A stretch of 63,254 nt of DNA, counting the filler, from Octopus bimaculoides (Eukaryota), in NCBI RefSeq assembly GCF_001194135.2. It is 5 parts of 5 records of this genome, joined end to end, with 100 filler letters (N's around TTAATTAATTAA, not from the genome) between each part and the next. Parts side by side here need not be neighbours in the genome. Positions count along the whole stretch, not along the records: positions 23,026 to 31,525 come from NC_068994.1; 4 more parts are not named here. One strand, 5' to 3'. The translations under genes were made by a program, and so were the position numbers. Shown piece by piece: positions 23,026 to 31,525 of this stretch; the first letter of the stretch is position 1; each line of letters begins with the position of its first letter. The notes beneath the pieces are model-generated. The model was not told where the DNA came from and made no database searches. It saw nothing but the letters and a program-made list of their open reading frames with translations.

Positions 23026-23170
23026 ACCGCAAAACGGTTTAATGATATCACTCGAAATCCGGACTACACTCATAATTTTTTTTTTTTCTTATGGGCCGAA
23101 ATAGCTTGTGGTGTGATGGAGGAAAAAGACAACAAGAAGCAAAAGGACAGAATGAAACGTTGGACCTTAC

Positions 23171-23330
23171 CTTGTCGACCGCAGCGGAGTACACAATCGC
23201 TCTTGATCTAAACACGTCTTTCTCGTAACCTGTCTGTTTTCTGACTCGCACGTGCTGGCCTTCGACCGTGTGTGGCCGACTTCCGGTCTGACCCTTCCGG
23301 TCTGGCCCTTCCGGTCTGGCTTCACTTCTG
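23171..23330 (-). promoter_or_regulatory. Putative CpG-rich promoter and non-coding first exon
   Basis: Three tandem ~14-bp units each containing CCGGAAG (ETS-type), an E-box CACGTG, locally high CpG, and a strong donor AAG|GTAAGG at 23171/23170. Confidence 0.4.
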
Positions 23331-23687
23331 TTTGTCTCATCTCTCTCCACCAACAACACACAGCTCATCACAGCCCCTAACACCACAAAGAGCTGACCAC
23401 AAAATATTGACATCACCATACCACAGACCATATCATCCTATATTCACTACACCACACAACATTCCTCCCATGCCAAACTCCATCACATTACATCATTCTC
23501 CCTCACAACATGTAGTATCCCCATCAAGGTGCACTCCACCATATATTATATTGCTTTATCCCACAAGAGCTTACCACACTTCTCTTCACCCTGCCACTCA
23601 CTCCCGTACTCCAACATTTCACACTACAACCCATACAATCCATATCACATCGATCCAAAACACACAACAAACTACAATAGCACCAAC

Positions 23688-23798
23688 TTTGTATTCTTCA
23701 TTGTCGATTTGGTGAGTATCTGGTAGGTCCCTTAGATAGAAGAAACTCTGTTCCTTGGAATGAATCACATCATTCAGAACAGCATGCTGAATTTCAAG
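23688..23798 (-). CDS. Exon of DUF4062-domain protein (third visible exon)
   Basis: TTCTTCAG acceptor. 111 nt, phase 0, LEIQHAVLNDVIHSKEQSFFYLRDLPDTHQIDNEEYK. Continues the family motif SVT.LEI.H.VL...FFY.RD. The donor (GTTGGT) is less certain. Confidence 0.75.
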
Positions 23799-24689
23799 CT
23801 GAAGAACAACAAGGGTAGAAATTCTATTCAGAACAAGGATTTGATTTGAATCTCTGTGGTGTCTTTTGGATAAAATTCAAACCACATGATAAGAAACGAC
23901 CTTCTCAACCACAGAGCCATACTTGTTCCCACACATACACATTCAAGCACAGATACATGTGCTATGCCTGTGATATAACAATGCTACAGTCATAATGAGC
24001 AATATGAAGTAAAACAATATCAGCCTAGTATAAAATCCTTGTCTCTCTTGCTAATTAGTTCTCTATCAATAACCAGTGAAGAACTTGCACTGTCTTAGAT
24101 ATGTGAAACCTATCAAACAGGACAGTGACAATGAAACAGTGATAAAGAGTCAGTGACATTAATGAGACAATGAAAATATGTATGACATGACTGAGGTACT
24201 TCCTTTTACCAACTCTCACTCAGCTATCATGACTTACGATGGTGTCAAACAGCATTAAAATGTACGGTCTAAAGTTGTTTGGGAATATATTATTTTGATC
24301 CCAGAATACGAATCATAATCTAGAAATCAAAACACAGGCATACAAAACATAAATTAAAACTTATATGAATTAAAATACCTATAAATAAAGCATAAAACAT
24401 AGTTCAATTGAAAAGGATAAAATACTAAGAAAGTAAAAGGTGAAGAGACTAAGCAATCAATATTCACTCATTAAAAAACAAAAACAAAAAAAAAGGGTCA
24501 GATTCCACCCATCCATTTCCCTTAGTAACTTTCCAAAAAAAAGGACTGGAAATTGTGAAGGATGACTTCCGAATCTCTTGCAACTCTTCTGGACGATCCC
24601 CTTGTCTAAAATACACAAAAGTGAAAATAACACTGACATCTCATTTTAACAGATATATTTCCCAAAATTACATAAAAATATCTTCAAAT

Positions 24690-24950
24690 ACTAAAAAGTA
24701 AATTTATCCAATAAAATCGCCATTGGCTTCAACCACAGTCTCCAGACGACTTCGGAATCTCCTGCAACTCTTCTGGATAGTCTCCTTGTTTAAGTTGGTG
24801 AATGCTGCCATAATCCTTGCCTTCAGTCCATAAGGAGTTTTATTGGTCTCTCGCTCAACTGTACCCTACACAAAATAATCAAGAGGGTTGCGGTCTGGGG
24901 AGTTAGGTAGCCAGATGTTAGGGGTTGTGTGGTCACAAATCTGAATTGCT
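24690..24950 (-). mobile_element. Tc1/mariner transposase C-terminal remnant
   Basis: 'WLPNSPDRNPLDYFV*GTVERETNKTPYGLKARIMAAFTNLNKETIQKSCRRFRSRLETVVEANGDFI' contains the SPDLNP.D catalytic motif. Confidence 0.8.
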
Positions 24951-25252
24951 ATGTCATGTGCCTTCAGACATGCACACATATATTGAGAGATGATAGAATG
25001 AGAGCATGGAATAAAAGTATTGTGTAATATTTCATTCACCCATTTAGGTTCTGAGTTAAACTATTGCCATTAACTTTGCCTTTCCTTTTGAAGGTGATAA
25101 AATAAATAATCAAAGTGGATATAATTGATTATACCCTAAAGTAGATGCAGCACAATCACATGACTTTCAGTAATTTTAAAGTATTTCAATAGCCTCAATA
25201 TTTAGCGCATATGCAACACACAAACACTCTTTACTAAACATTTACACCCTAC

Positions 25253-25423
25253 CTGTGTTACACTGACTCCATAACGACACTCTTCCAACCATTTTAAATC
25301 ACTGATATGTTCAATGGCATAATTAAAACTCTCATTAAGGACAATATCAGGTTTGTCTTCTCTCTGGCTCCAACCAAATTTTTCTCCCATTAAAGAAATG
25401 AAGTAAGGGCGACATCTCTCAAT
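25253..25423 (-). CDS. Exon of DUF4062-domain protein (second visible exon)
   Basis: TTTTTCTTCCAG acceptor and CAG|GTAGGG donor. 171 nt, phase 0-0, IERCRPYFISLMGEKFGWSQREDKPDIVLNESFNYAIEHISDLKWLEECRYGVSVTQ. Confidence 0.9.
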
Positions 25424-27367
25424 CTGGAAGAAAAACATTGATAAATATAGCACGCAAGATCACATTCTTCCTACATATTTGTTTCTTTTCCTCATCCCCC
25501 TACTGTGCCTATATTCTACCATTATTCTCCTCCTCACATTATTATCACCATTTTATAAGTGTGTGTAGGAATATTATAAGCACATACATAGAACAAAAAG
25601 TTTCTTAGCAGTTATTCAAGCCCATATTTTCATGCTTTGGAAATCTATGTATCAAATTTAAATAGTTAATGTGGATACAGCTTGCTGGAGCCTTTCAAGC
25701 ATTCCACTACATTTTTTTTTTTAATTGTGAAGCACATCTATCAGTTAATACTGCTGCTATATAAACCAGAAGATTGCGGAAAGCATAAAAGTACTTGTTT
25801 TATCATGTCATGTCATAAAGTTGTGAATATATTCTTAAGTCAACCATTTCGTCAATCACAGCAGCTTCACCACTAATTCAGTTCTCAACTAAATTGCAAA
25901 CTGTTAACAGTTTTAAAGAGGACACCTCCTCAGCTACACTTTGGCATAAATAGTTTGAGATTTGGTTCCGTAGAAAAAATGTTACATCAAAATATGTCAG
26001 ACATCAAGGGGGTGGGGCAGTAAGGCAGATATTCATTATCAATTAACATAAATTTTTTAATTTTAAAATAAAAGTATACTTTTCTTAGGCTTAAATGATA
26101 GAAAAATGCACGAGGAATTCAGAATCATTTGTCGCATTGGACAAAAAATAGTAGAAAAAGAGTTATGCACAAAATTTAATGTCAGTAAGTAAGAAGTGAT
26201 ACCCCAAGCAATAAGAATAAAGAAAATATCTCTAAGGCTGTGAGCTGGCGGAAATGTTAGCACGCAACCGGGCGAAATGCTTAGTGGTATTTCGTCTGTC
26301 TTTATGTTTTCAGTTCAAATTTCGCCAAAGTCAACTTTGTCTTTTATCCATTTTGGATCTATTCAGTTTGATGTACAGATTATTTAATTAATTTTTTTAA
26401 ACTAAATACTTCGAAACTTCCAATACTGGTAGAATGTGTCACATAGAACAGGGTTTAGTCTTAACATTTTTGACAAAAGTTTGTATTTTAGGAGTTATTT
26501 GGTCAGAAGTTACAGAGTGACAATGGACAAATTCGTGTTTGAGAAGTGCCAATGCACGAAACTCTCAGCTTTTGACTTACTCTCTAACTTCTGCCGATAA
26601 TATATATGCATATTACATATATGTGTAAAAAAAAAAACAATCTCGTCATACAATCTCGTCATACAATCGAACCAATGAAAGAGTCTCTACCTGGTTGCTT
26701 GACACGCTAAAAATAGCAGCCAAAGTACCCCCCTACCTAAATTACATGCTCATTGTACATAATGTCCTTGATTATCCCTAAAAAGACGGTTTGCTGAAGG
26801 CTGGAATGTCTTTGATGATAGGTCTGCAGTATCAGGGTTGATTTGAGGCTAAATAACAACAACATTATGTTAAATTTCTATATTAACACCTGCATGATTT
26901 TTTACGTAGAATCAAGTACCCTGACCTCCTAATATGCTGCAATTCCCTTTTTTTTTTTTTTCATTCAGAAAGAATGAGGTGGGGAGAACCGCCCCACATA
27001 CCTAATTCCGGAAACACTGGAAATTTTTTTTTTGTTGAATGAAGTCCTGTGACCTAATATGGCAAAATTAGGTAATTTAAGGTGAGCCTGGTAACTAATG
27101 GTTTTGGGGTCTTGTTTGTAACTTTTGGTGAGCCATAGTGCAACCAACAACATCATAAAAATGCCTGCCATTAATCTGGTGTGGATGGGTAATATCAAAT
27201 AATTCAAACACAACATAGTTAAATTAAACATGAAAAAAATTGAAATATTATCATCACTTTCATGGAAAAATTGAAATATCTTTCAGTGTTTTATAAGATA
27301 AAATCTTAAATTATTAATTGACACATTAGTAATTATCTTATAACAGCAATGCCTGGAAAAATCATGG

Positions 27368-27883
27368 ATTACATGAGAAAATGCGAGCATGAAAAGTAAT
27401 ATTCTTAAGATTATAAACCTGGAAAAGTACAGGACAAGTTATTACACCTGTAAAAGTATAGGACAAGCTATTACTTCTAGTAAAGAACAAGAAACTTTTT
27501 ACTTAAAACATTGCGGCTAAAATTAAAATTTGAATATTAAAACTTATTTTATTATAGTTTACAAATAACGATATACTAATTTAAGTGGAATTTGGCTAAT
27601 TTACTACCTTAAATACAGAAAAAAGTGACTAATTAGACAAACTTACAAATTAACTGAACAGTTTAGTACAATAAATTTAAAAGATGAGAACTGTAAAGAG
27701 TGATAAATTTGAAGAACTGGCATTCATTGCTGCAATATTTTAAGTAAAAAGTTTCTTATTCTTTACTTTACTAGAAGTAATAGCTTGTCCTGTACTTTTA
27801 CAGATGTAATAACTTGTCCTGTACTTTTCCAGGTTTATAATCTTAAGAATATGACTTTCCATGCTTGCATTTTTCCATGTAAT
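27368..27883. mobile_element. MITE/foldback element with ~150-bp terminal inverted repeats
   Basis: 27368-27517 is the reverse complement of 27729-27883 (e.g. TTCTTAAGATTATAAACCTGGAAAAGTACAGGACAAGTTATTACA). AT-rich spacer between the arms. Confidence 0.85.
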
Positions 27884-27929
27884 ATATATATATACGTATA
27901 TATAAGGTGCAATAAACACTGTAAACAAA

Positions 27930-29060
27930 CAGGAAACAACTTCTGTGTCATTCCAGGGAGAAAAACTAGAGGTAGTTGATAGCTTCTGCTATCTGGGTGA
28001 CCAAGTTAGTAGTGGGGGTGGGTGCGCTGAAAGTGTAGCTGCTAGAATAAGAATATCCTGGGCAAAGTTCAGAGAGCTCTTACCTCTGCTGGTGACAAAG
28101 GGACTCTCACTCAGAGTAAAGGGTAGACTGTATGATGCATGTGTACGAACATCCATGCTACATGGCAGTGAAACATGGGCTGTGACTGCTGAGGACATGC
28201 GTAAGCTCGCAAGGAAAGAAGCCAGTATGCTCCGATGCATGTGTAATGTCAGTGTGCATACTAGACAGAGTGTAAGTACCTTGAAAGAAAAGTTGAACCT
28301 AAGAAGCATCNNNNNNNNNNNNNNNNNNNNNNNNNNNNNNNNNNNNNNNNNNNNNNNNNNNNNNNNNNNNNNNNNNNNNNNNNNNNNNNNNNNNNNNNNN
28401 NNNNNNNNNNNNNNNNNNNNNNNNNNNNNNNNNNNNNNNNNNNNNNNNNNNNNNNNNNNNNNNNNNNNNNNNNNNNNNNNNNNNNNNNNNNNNNNNNNNN
28501 NNNNNNNNNNNNNNNNNNNNNNNNNNNNNNNNNNNNNNNNNNNNNNNNNNNNNNNNNNNNNNNNNNNNNNNNNNNNNNNNNNNNNNNNNNNNNNNNNNNN
28601 NNNNNNNNNNNNNNNNNNNNNNNNNNNNNNNNNNNNNNNNNNNNNNNNNNNNNNNNNNNNNNNNNNNNNNNNNNNNNNNNNATTGGGGCAAGCGAAAGCG
28701 AAATCGGGATGGCACCTGTGCCCAGCGTCGCCTTTCTGGCACTTGTACCTGCGGCATATGTAAGGACTTTCGAGCGAGATCGTTGCCAGTGCCCCTGGAC
28801 TCGCTCTTGTGCGGGTGGCACATAAAATACACCATTTTGAGCATGGCCGTTGCCAGCACAGCATGACTGGCCTTCGTGCTGGTAGCACGTAAAAGCACCC
28901 ACTACACTCTCAGAGTGGTTGGCGTTAGGAAGGGCATCCAGCTGTAGAAACTCTGCCAAATCAGATTGGAGCCTGGTGTAGCCATCTGGTTTCACCAGTC
29001 CTCAGTCAAATCGTCCAACCCATGTTAGCATGGAAAGCGGACGTTAAACGATGATGATGA
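27930..29060 (+). mobile_element. 5'-truncated RTE-clade LINE (RT C-terminal region, gap, 3' UTR, (GAT)n tail)
   Basis: 'EVVDSFCYLGDQVSSGGGCAESVAARIRISWAKFRELLPLL...KGRLYDACVRTSMLHGSETW' and tail CCATGTTAGCATGGAAAGCGGACGTTAAACGATGATGAT. Confidence 0.88.
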
Positions 29061-29066
29061 GGATGA

Positions 29067-29097
<31 letters not shown>

Positions 29098-29679
29098 CAT
29101 GCACATACCACACATCATCATGCACACTCCCACATCCACACAGGCATATAATACCCAGACACAGACAATATATTCACATGCATGCAGCATCCATAAACAC
29201 ATGCAACATGCATAGACAAACTTTCACCCACAAACATACACTCTGCACATGCACACTATTTGGTCACACACGTGTACACACCACCTGAACAAACACACAT
29301 CAACTGCTACATACAACACACTCACACACACACAAACACACACACACACACACACTCACACACACACACACACTCACGTATGTAAGACTCACTTGCCCCC
29401 ATTCACACACACTCACTCACACCATTCTCAAATACACGCACATGCTTGTGCACCTGAGTTTGTTGGGTCGCCATTACTGTTATTATTATTATTATCTCTG
29501 TTTCATTCAAGCTCTTTTTCCAAGTCATCTCACCATGTTGGACTCTGCACAGTTTTTCTCTCTCCATTTTTTCCCTCTTAATCCTTTCTGTCAAAGAACT
29601 TAGGCTCAAAACATAAAAGTCTTTTCCATTTTTCCCAAGCGTTAGACTAATACACCTGCTTGTTGTTCCTACAACTGTC

Positions 29680-30610
29680 TTCATCTTTTGTTTTCTGTAA
29701 ATTTGAACAAATATATATATATAGGGGGAGAAGTCACAAAAAAAAGCAAAAAACGAAGACAGGTAGTGTAGACAACAAACAGATGTATTAGTTTAACGCT
29801 CAGGAAGTGAAAAAGTCTTTTACGTTTTGAGCCTGCACTCTTCCACAGAAAGGAACACAGAAAGAAACAAGGGGAGAAGATAAAGAATGTGTAGTGGCTA
29901 GCGATCTATCATGGTGAATGCCGGACAGAAGGGTCACACAGGAGAGTTAGGAAGGAGGGGAGATAATAAAGTAGTGGTGATCCCAAAATGAAGGTGCGCG
30001 AGTGTGTGTATAAGAGAGTATGTGCGTGTGGAAGAGGGCAGGTGATCTTGACGTGTGTGTGTATGTGCAGGTGTGTGGATGTGGGGTTGGGAAGTGGTCA
30101 GTGCTAGTGTGTGCATGGTGGTGTGATGTGGTGTTGTGTGGTATGGTGGTGTATGGGGAAGGGAGAAGGTGGGTAGGAGTGAAGAGAAGAGAGAAGGAGA
30201 GTAGAAGTGAAGAGAAGTAGGAGTCGTAGCAAGAGATGAGAGGTGGATGGGACGAAGTAGGTGTGAGAGGAGAGAGGGGAGGAGAGTAGAGTTGACTCCA
30301 TGTGGTGAGAGTAGAGTTGACTCCATGTGGCGCAAAGGAGCAAAGAGAGAAGATTAATCCCTGTTTACGGCGCAAGCAGGAGCCAGATGGCCCCTGTACA
30401 AGGACAACCTGAACACAGACAGGTGTTGCAAAGAGTGACTGGTAGAGCAGAAATGGTGCGAGACTGGGGTGTCATTGCTGAGTTGGATGTCTCACAAGTG
30501 TTCCATGAACCGGTTAGCCAAGCAGCATCCCGTTTGCCCGATGTATAGAGAAGGGCAGAGAGAGCAGGAGATGCGGTAGATGACATTAGTAGAAGTGCAG
30601 GTATAATAAA
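29680..30610 (-). mobile_element. Penelope-like element 3' part: decayed GIY-YIG endonuclease, low-complexity 3' region and hammerhead-like terminal repeat
   Basis: A minus frame absent from the track reads YTCTSTNVIYRISCSLCPSLYIGQTGCCLANRFMEHL*DIQLSNDTPVSHHFCSTSHSLQHLSV (~30606-30400). Hammerhead-like motif at 29816-29853. Confidence 0.82.
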
Positions 30611-30649
30611 CACTTGAAATGTACAGGAAATAGACTTTGTCAAATACCT

Positions 30650-30950
30650 GGGGGGATACTTAGAAGTAGCAGATAACTTCTGTTACCTACATGACCAAGT
30701 CAGAAGTGGAGGAGGATGCTATGAAGGCATAGGGGTTAAAATAAGAACAGGCTGGGTGAAATTCAGAGAGCTATCTTGTTGGTAACAAAGGGCCTCTCCC
30801 TCTGAATGAAAGGCAGACTGTATGATGGTATGATGCTTCTGTGTGAACAGCCATGCTACACGCCAGTGAAACATGGTCTGTAACTGCGGAGGACATGCAA
30901 AGGCTTGAAAGAAATGAAGCTACCATCCTCTGCGGGATATGCAATGAAGA
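30650..30950 (+). mobile_element. Second, more decayed RTE LINE fragment
   Basis: Nucleotide homology to 27960-28250 (TTAGAAGTAGCAGATAACTTCTGTTACCTA...GCCAGTGAAACATGGTCTGTAACTGCGGAGGACATGC). Confidence 0.8.
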
Positions 30951-31144
30951 AATAAAAAAAATTTGATGGTGTATACACACACACATGTATACAACACTTA
31001 AATTCATATGCTTAGATGTACTTACATATATACACACATTCATATACATGCATCAATACACTCATACATAAATAAAGTATCAGCTTTGGTAGTAACCACA
31101 ATGAAAGTTTCTGAAACAAATTTCCTCTAAGAGTTTCAACTTAC

Positions 31145-31258
31145 TTCTTGAAGACAATTTGCAATAGTTTTTTCATGCTGATTCTGTTCTTGGCTTATTC
31201 CCCATCTTAGATCAACATAAGAGAAAAAAATTCTTCGATCCATACATTCTTGGTTGAG
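31145..31258 (-). CDS. Exon of DUF4062-domain protein (first visible exon)
   Basis: TTTGTTTTCCAG acceptor and GAA|GTAAGT donor. 114 nt, phase 0-0, LNQECMDRRIFFSYVDLRWGISQEQNQHEKTIANCLQE with the diagnostic VDLRWG motif. Not in the ORF track. Confidence 0.9.
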
Positions 31259-31294
31259 CTGGAAAACAAAATAAAGTATCATTTGCTTGGATTC

Positions 31295-31525
31295 TATCAT
31301 CATCATCATCATCATCGTTTAACGTCCGCTTTCCATGCTAGCATGGGTTGGACGATTTGACTGAGGACTGGTGAAACCGGATGGCAACACCAGGCCCCAG
31401 TCTGATTTGGCAGAGTTTCTACAGCTGGATGCCCTTCCTAACGCCAACCACTCAGAGAGTGTAGTGGGTGCTTTTACGTGTCACCCGCACGAAAACGGCC
31501 ACGCTCGAAATGGTGTCTTTTATGT
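31295..31525 (-). mobile_element. 3' end of the same RTE family, inverted
   Basis: Reverse complement of 28830-29060, with a (CAT)n tail at 31295-31317. Confidence 0.88.

Follow-up and report, generated by a model that had tools for sequence, protein, structure and literature searches.

Three octopus exons encoding the central part of a DUF4062/NIR domain in a predicted FBA-NACHT-TPR protein

Three preprints from 2026 describe the DUF4062 domain, renamed NIR, as a TIR-like nicotinamide adenine dinucleotide (NAD+) hydrolase (NADase) in the bacterial systems Swarozyc, Avs2, Vulcan and Vesta and in human TEP1. The TIR-like/NIR domain of TEP1 comprises residues 886-1113 (PDB 11gz; Osinski et al. 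2026, bioRxiv 10.64898/2026.05.01.722283; Le Mouellic et al. 2026, bioRxiv 10.64898/2026.09.04.749371). Activity hinges on a single glutamate (KpSwz E97, PsAvs2 E108, Vulcan E98, Vesta E103 and TEP1 E1008), and the third preprint, on Evangelion, reports a modelled TIR-like NADase core with a putative catalytic glutamate, E87. Activation by oligomerisation or concentration has been published for family members, the activity of TEP1 being concentration-dependent, and an alanine mutant of TEP1 R976, in the G-x-R-Y/F-G loop, had reduced activity. Of four purified human DUF4062 proteins, only TEP1 hydrolysed NAD+; NWD1, NWD2 and NPHP3 were inactive in vitro. Here, we analysed a 63,254-nt stretch of joined DNA (hereafter the window) from Octopus bimaculoides (assembly GCF_001194135.2), whose 8.5-kb part at positions 23026-31525 (NC_068994.1) carries three exons of a gene from this family. 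The explanation that we consider best, and probably correct, is that these exons encode the central piece of the NIR domain of a protein with F-box-associated (FBA), NIR, NACHT and TPR modules, which may act as a STAND-gated NADase.

The octopus protein shares with human TEP1 its Pfam family, the motifs VDLRWG, CLxE, GxR/KY/FG and SVTxxE, a glutamate equivalent to E1008 (Glu97 of the peptide spliced from the three exons) and an internal domain placed directly before a NACHT module. It differs in its flanks, which are FBA and TPR, whereas TEP1, found in vaults, carries TROVE and vWA upstream and WD40 downstream. Similarity is also weak (35 bits, E 1.2e-7, for the single-sequence match of the peptide to the 220-residue TEP1 chain of 11gz), and lysine occupies the octopus positions of R908, R954 and R976. 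Bacterial NIR effectors (Avs2-NIR, Swarozyc, Vulcan, Vesta and Evangelion) have the same domain with a corresponding catalytic glutamate, and Avs2 shares the logic of effector, STAND NTPase and TPR; their domain, however, is N-terminal, and their triggers are phage proteins such as portal, whereas the octopus protein has an N-terminal extension of 700-1,000 residues. NWD1, NWD2, TTC41 and NPHP3 (also entered as 'TPR repeat-containing protein DDB_G0287407-like') likewise place NIR beside NACHT, followed by WD40 or TPR, and the TPR region of the octopus orthologues partially matches the Pfam NPHP3 models TPR_NPHP3 and NPHP3_N, below cut-off. By contrast, in these proteins the domain lies at or near the N-terminus, without FBA; none of the four was found by name among the best 150 matches.

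Three minus-strand exons and their family

The three exons lie on the minus strand. Exon A, at 31145-31258 (114 nt), encodes 38 aa (LNQECMDRRIFFSYVDLRWGISQEQNQHEKTIANCLQE) between the acceptor ttttccAG and the donor GTAAGT; exon B, at 25253-25423 (171 nt), encodes 57 aa (IERCRPYF...GVSVTQ; acceptor cttccAG, donor GTAGGG); and exon C, at 23688-23798 (111 nt), encodes 37 aa (LEIQHAVLNDVIHSKEQSFFYLRDLPDTHQIDNEEYK; acceptor ttcttcAG, donor GTTGGT). They are separated by intron 1 (25424-31144; 5,721 nt), which holds several interspersed-repeat copies and an assembly gap, and by intron 2 (23799-25252; 1,454 nt). In all three cases a pyrimidine tract and AG precede the exon and GT follows it, and all exons are phase 0 with lengths that are multiples of three, so that splicing yields 38 + 57 + 37 = 132 aa. 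The coordinates and translation are exactly those claimed in an earlier note on this DNA, which had called the exons hidden with good reason: at the default threshold of 60 aa, the open reading frame (ORF) listing shows the ORF of exon B alone, and the other two are missing.

The same note had assigned the peptide to DUF4062 and had proposed a HMMER comparison with that Pfam family. The spliced peptide matched DUF4062 (PF13271) at 30.2 bits against a gathering score of 24.7 (E 5.4e-7), over residues 20-61 and so across the exon A/B junction; this score and the relatives found by phmmer go well past what chance would give and bear out the assignment. As the PF13271 model comprises 82 positions and ends near the G-x-R-Y-G loop, before the catalytic glutamate, such a match alone cannot show that the active-site part is present. 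When 1.8 billion representative proteins were searched exhaustively with the 132-aa peptide (phmmer), 5,605 matches reached E<=1e-3 and 1,401 reached E<=1e-10. The best was Octopus vulgaris CAI9733595.1/A0AA36FCZ1, named "FBA domain-containing protein" (E 4.5e-53). The next five (1,884-1,964 aa, E 1e-28 to 1e-44, 49-59% identity) came from amphioxus (Branchiostoma belcheri LOC109471895, E 5.9e-44), sea star (Patiria miniata LOC119740704), sea urchin (S. purpuratus LOC576310) and crinoid (Anneissia japonica LOC117111194), together with one transcriptome-derived protein, referred to here as P0009. The peptide scored 115-166 bits against this FBA-NIR-NACHT-TPR group, which is the gene's own group and aligns with it without gaps over both exon junctions. 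The relatives bear the names 'uncharacterized protein', 'hypothetical' or 'FBA domain-containing protein', and the gene is thus uncharacterised, as had been proposed. In the alignment, an SVT-Q-LE signature is common to octopus, amphioxus, sea urchin and P0009, with K/R in sea star and crinoid. A family profile matched the TEP1 TIR-like crystal chain 11gz_A at E 1.5e-37 and KpSwz at E 1.2e-4, and a word-indexed protein search returned only six short metagenomic homologues, 40-46% identical to the octopus peptide and probably bacterial, of unconfirmed source.

We compared the part 23026-31525 of the window with a 108-kb locus of O. vulgaris (OX597827.1, reversed; here L001), with which it is colinear over L001 67335-79881. 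At the nucleotide level, exons A, B and C are 98.2%, 98.2% and 97.3% identical between the two species, compared with 81-92% for introns. Differences affect 8 of the 396 exon nucleotides, four of them synonymous; two fall among the 114 nt of exon A (both synonymous) and three among the 171 nt of exon B (one non-synonymous). All six splice dinucleotides are kept in O. vulgaris, including that of the weak-looking exon C donor; for exon C, the acceptor ttcttcAG and the donor GTTGGT are unchanged as a whole. Given the difference between exon and intron identity and the retention of the splice dinucleotides, the exons are, by this two-species comparison, under constraint. Identity to O. vulgaris over the 132 aa is 94%, with a single substitution only after the spurious insert of the public model has been removed. 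Judging by this conservation, all three segments are genuine coding exons, conserved and belonging to a single octopus gene.

The public O. vulgaris model, CAI9733595.1 (1,126 aa), departs from the orthologues in being truncated, in carrying a spurious 10-aa mini-exon and in lacking exon C. Exon C is intact in that genome (L001 79486-79596), and at 111 nt its skipping stays in frame. The orthologues at the exon C position read SVTQLEIQHAALNN and SVTQLEIYHGVLNDV. Joining exon C of the window to the next O. vulgaris exon (VNLPESEWH...), 526 bp downstream of the exon C counterpart, gives ...THQIDNEEYK/VNLPESEWHKERQQSL, which aligns without gaps to TDEMDTEELKVCQAESPWHHEKQQSL of the transcript-derived P0009; this gapless junction supports the 3' boundary that the earlier reader had given to exon C. 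The 10-aa insert, MNICLTAQLE, was rejected as a conserved exon: although O. vulgaris has AG and GT at its ends, both are lacking from the homologous sequence at 26036-26007 of the window, and the insert is missing from all five orthologues aligned.

Other parts of the O. vulgaris model are also fragmentary. By comparison with the orthologues, several exons, for instance at L001 27427-27651, 38381-38527, 45814-46116, 50343-50438 and 79486-79596, are unannotated, and further exons were detected past the annotated end, at L001 105360-107256. Past …RGNTGLSACY, at about residue 1060, the model ends in ~66 residues of low-complexity junk. The gene spans more than 98 kb in O. vulgaris (stretch considered, L001 10001-108397), with its TPR exons outside the fetched locus.

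The assembly gap, a run of N at 28311-28681, falls within intron 1. Five orthologues aligned over the exon A/B junction (...CLQE/IERCRPYF...) with zero residues missing. On both sides of the gap, intron 1 is colinear with L001 67490-76057 at 81-92% identity, and the flanks keep their order and orientation relative to a single O. vulgaris intron (window 29159 corresponds to L001 71622 and 27904 to L001 73806). In O. vulgaris, tblastn with two orthologues detected no further exon in the interval separating the counterparts of exons A and B. From the gapless junction, the colinear flanks and the lack of an intervening exon, we conclude that the gap is intronic, that no coding sequence is lost in it and that its flanks are parts of the same intron. 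Directly beside the gap, the sequence matches nothing else in the locus except dispersed copies of repeats.

Domain extent and protein architecture

In the orthologue model, the elements of the domain follow the order βA (RLFVSSTF), αA, βB (VDLRWG), BB loop, αB (CLxEIxRC), βC (PYF...LG), helical insert, glutamate helix and βD (FFYLRD). Exon A encodes the end of αA, βB (VDLRWG), the BB loop and the start of αB; exon B encodes the remainder of αB, βC (PYFISLMG), the GEKFGW loop and the helical insert; and exon C encodes the helix with the catalytic glutamate and βD (FFYLRD), ending just past βD. The complete domain, from βA to αE, takes up ~220 aa, of which the window holds only the central 132 residues, βB to βD. 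The exon for βA and αA (REVRLFVSSTFKDFTKEREELIKKTFQE, ..RLFVSSTFKDF..) lies ~1.6 kb upstream in O. vulgaris, which places it beyond the edge at 31525, and the exon for αD, βE and αE lies downstream, outside 23026-31525. None of the flanking-exon peptides LFVSSTFKDF, EREELIKKTFQE, VNLPESEW and PESEWHKERQQ was found in the part 23026-31525. The three exons, which had been presented as the whole domain, therefore lack its first strand and helix and its last strand and helix, which are in exons beyond this piece.

AlphaFold modelled the 132-aa peptide with a predicted local distance difference test score (pLDDT) of 82 and the domain of the P0009 orthologue with a pLDDT of 88; the β-α-β-α order that a TIR-like, flavodoxin-type fold should have was seen, and in the P0009 model the glutamate stands at the start of the helix following βC. 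On the basis of the sequence match to the TEP1 crystal chain and the published structures, we assign the piece to a DUF4062/NIR domain with a probable TIR-like fold.

Pfam matches in the three full-length orthologues scanned followed the order FBA, DUF4062, NACHT and TPR (TPR_12), and those in the truncated O. vulgaris model the order FBA, DUF4062 and NACHT. The DUF4062 domain starts at residue 968-1,005 in the three full-length orthologues and at residue 707 in the truncated model (~700-1,030 across the six closest relatives); the FBA domain stands before it and is itself preceded by an extension of ~750 residues in which Pfam matched nothing. In P0009, the same order is contained in one uninterrupted 1,952-aa ORF on an intronless 6,023-nt transcript contig. 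On a single strand of the O. vulgaris locus, exons for FBA, for NIR (three) and for NACHT follow one another colinearly across ~80 kb, with the P-loop exon (GESGCGKSS) and further NACHT-region exons downstream, outside the window. Because P0009 is a single contig and the O. vulgaris exons are colinear, the architecture is not a gene-fusion artefact. As predicted from these relatives, the gene encodes a protein of ~1,900-2,000 aa with an N-terminal extension, an FBA β-sandwich, NIR, a NACHT P-loop NTPase and TPR.

A STAND protein with TPR had been anticipated, and the NACHT and TPR_12 matches after the domain in the orthologues, as well as the colinear NACHT exons of O. vulgaris, uphold that part of the earlier proposal. 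The domain is not the N-terminus, however, as had been supposed: in the closest relatives and P0009 it is preceded by ~700-1,000 residues that include FBA. No Pfam matches to TROVE, vWA or WD40 were found in the four closest relatives scanned. We rejected membership of the NPHP3 family, as TPR_NPHP3 scored 66-82 bits in the orthologues against a cut-off of 100 and NPHP3_N 20.8 against 24.8. A full-text literature search for 'F-box associated' together with NACHT and TPR found no paper describing the order FBA-NIR-NACHT-TPR.

Catalytic glutamate and possible function

The numbering of TEP1 chain 11gz_A has an offset of 893, fixed by R908, R954 and R976 being chain residues 15, 61 and 83; TEP1 E1008 is therefore chain E115, the second glutamate of SVTEMEV. 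This residue aligns with Glu97 of the octopus peptide, the glutamate of SVTQ/LEIQH, encoded by the second codon of exon C (GAA, 23793-23795, minus strand). Glutamate occupies this column in 40 of 41 aligned homologues, and Glu97 is the predicted catalytic glutamate. The earlier note had put the glutamate of CLQE (E38, the last codon of exon A, 31147-31145) at the catalytic position. That residue aligns instead with TEP1 E962, which is not named as catalytic in either TEP1 preprint, and its column holds glutamate in 34 of 41 homologues. The CLQE Glu-to-Ala mutant that had been proposed would therefore target the wrong position. Experiments on bacterial members and on human TEP1 have since confirmed the broader idea that the family is TIR-like and cleaves NAD+. 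All family-invariant residues, as well as the catalytic glutamate, are present in the octopus peptide.

By analogy with bacterial Avs2-NIR, Swarozyc and human TEP1, the resting protein would be a STAND monomer that inhibits itself. Once the TPR modules, the FBA module or both sense a ligand, the NACHT module would oligomerise, and oligomerisation would crowd the NIR domains and open their active sites. With Glu97 of LEIQH as the catalytic residue, NAD+ (or NADP+) would then be cleaved to ADP-ribose and nicotinamide, while Lys30, Lys53 and one lysine from the upstream exon might stand in for the three phosphate-binding arginines of TEP1. The likely outcome would be depletion of NAD+, or a stress or cell-death signal. 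An activity of the octopus protein is plausible on this analogy; for Glu97-dependent NADase activity upon activation, and for the mechanism as a whole, we see the chances as roughly even.

Several observations weigh against a STAND-gated NADase. The positions of the three sulfate-binding arginines of TEP1 (R908, R954 and R976) are all lysine in octopus, and the lysine equivalent to R976 (K53, 25381-25379 in exon B) recurs in none of the 41 sequences compared, arginine being the residue in 38. In the BB loop, a near-invariant glycine (34 of 41 homologues) is glutamate in octopus. Foldseek searches of the PDB gave no match below E 0.6 for the 132-aa model, a neutral result because this model is without the central first strand, and nothing significant for the P0009 model, with no TIR structure found and a best E of 0.058, to flavodoxin-like FMN (flavin mononucleotide) reductases and RadA. 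The inactivity of NWD1, NWD2 and NPHP3 in vitro also counts against an active octopus protein. Because exon C is missing from the sole public octopus model, there may be an isoform that has no catalytic glutamate. Finally, the window contains only three of the at least 20 exons of the gene.

Some of these observations would be explained if the NIR domain were catalytically silent and served as an oligomerisation or scaffolding module that signals through protein-protein contacts, as may hold for NWD1, NWD2 and NPHP3. This explanation draws on TEP1 having been the only one of the four purified human proteins to hydrolyse NAD+, and on octopus alone having lysine for the near-invariant arginine, with glutamate in place of the BB-loop glycine. 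However, the glutamate found in 40 of 41 homologues is retained, a change from arginine to lysine preserves charge, and the human proteins may simply lack activation in vitro. The constraint on the exons speaks for function, though it is equally compatible with a scaffold role. We consider a silent domain possible but rather unlikely.

A bolder proposal, which keeps the NADase but which we hold to be doubtful, is that FBA-NIR-NACHT-TPR proteins form a conserved, undescribed class of NLR-like sensors in bilaterians (mollusc, cephalochordate and echinoderms), in which a glycan-binding FBA domain and TPRs would gate an internal NADase, and in which skipping of exon C would act as a splice switch to a catalytically dead isoform. 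If true, recognition of aberrant or foreign glycans would be tied to depletion of NAD+.

It is very unlikely that the exons are relics of a decaying pseudogene or an unexpressed duplicate, with the gene itself an annotation artefact. The introns are indeed full of transposon debris, and the public O. vulgaris model is fragmentary with junk at its end, but the three frames are open, their canonical splice sites are identical in two species, exons have diverged by ~2% compared with 8-19% for introns, all family-invariant residues are present, and exons matching the orthologues are colinear over ~80 kb in O. vulgaris. An origin in an octopus orthologue of TEP1, the vault and telomerase protein, was rejected and is effectively refuted: TEP1 is the sole solved structure matched and the one animal DUF4062 protein known to have an internal domain, but the closest relatives scanned have FBA upstream and TPR downstream rather than TROVE, vWA and WD40, the peptide scores 35 bits against the TEP1 chain compared with 115-166 bits (49-59% identity) against the FBA-NIR-NACHT-TPR group, and FBA exons are colinear upstream in the O. 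vulgaris locus.

The octopus gene is a further member of a recently described family, within an uncharacterised orthologue group. Publications of 2026 already cover the family itself, the TIR-like fold, the NADase chemistry and how widely the domain occurs among eukaryotic NLR-like proteins, so the central biochemical idea of the earlier note is no longer new. What is added here is an internal domain with FBA upstream, a domain order that our literature search did not find, and what remains worth recording is this unusual conserved architecture together with a corrected gene model and a corrected catalytic residue. Surveys that score the presence of the catalytic glutamate from predicted proteomes would misclassify the O. 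vulgaris model, from which exon C is omitted. For an immune-type NLR, 49-59% identity from octopus to amphioxus is high, which suggests that the role is a conserved one in housekeeping or stress.

Repeats and other features of the locus

Intron 2 is mostly colinear with L001 76229-79485, except that O. vulgaris has nothing colinear with window 24943-24609, which for that reason is probably a lineage-specific insertion. The same area contains a degraded minus-strand ORF at 24704-25039, which reads …NIWLPNSPDRNPLDYFV, an in-frame stop, then GTVERETNKTP…RFRSRLETVVEANGDFIG; it has no Pfam match, and we take it to resemble the C-terminal end of a mariner/Tc1-type transposase. This area also includes a direct repeat of 49 nt (24561-24609 and 24745-24793).

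The last 368 nt of the part 23026-31525 in the direction of the gene, window 23026-23393, are not colinear with O. vulgaris and have no match in the 108-kb locus. They are apparently richer in GC than their surroundings and include three tandem copies of CCAGACCGGAAGGG. The next O. vulgaris coding exon would fall within this segment and is not contained there, a sign that an insertion or a rearrangement took place or that the assembly was joined here.

Neither Rfam nor a tRNA scan gave a match in the part 23026-31525. An interspersed repeat of 195 nt is present as an inverted pair, at 28873-29067 and 31299-31493, whose members are 95% complementary and each end in (ATC/GAT)n. At least six further copies, 82-88% identical, occur at L001 52.3, 59.5, 77.3, 86.8, 97.4 and 107.3 kb, and the repeat looks like an octopus element of the short interspersed element (SINE) type. 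Intron 1 also contains a 118-nt inverted repeat (27368-27485 and 27766-27883; 94% complementary, with a 280-nt spacer), which O. vulgaris shares at the colinear position (L001 ~73.8-74.35 kb) and which could be a foldback element or one resembling a miniature inverted-repeat transposable element (MITE).

A plus-strand ORF fragment (…LYDACVRTSMLHGSETWAVTAEDMRKL…) occurs in two copies, at 27945-28310 and 30777-30946, which are 77-82% identical, the first abutting the assembly gap. It has no significant Pfam match and is tentatively taken to resemble the C-terminal tail of a reverse transcriptase from a retrotransposon without long terminal repeats (non-LTR). Microsatellites of (TG)n at 29300-29400 and of (AT)n at 29070-29110, both in intron 1, give rise to spurious Cys/Val-rich and His/Thr-rich ORFs on both strands.

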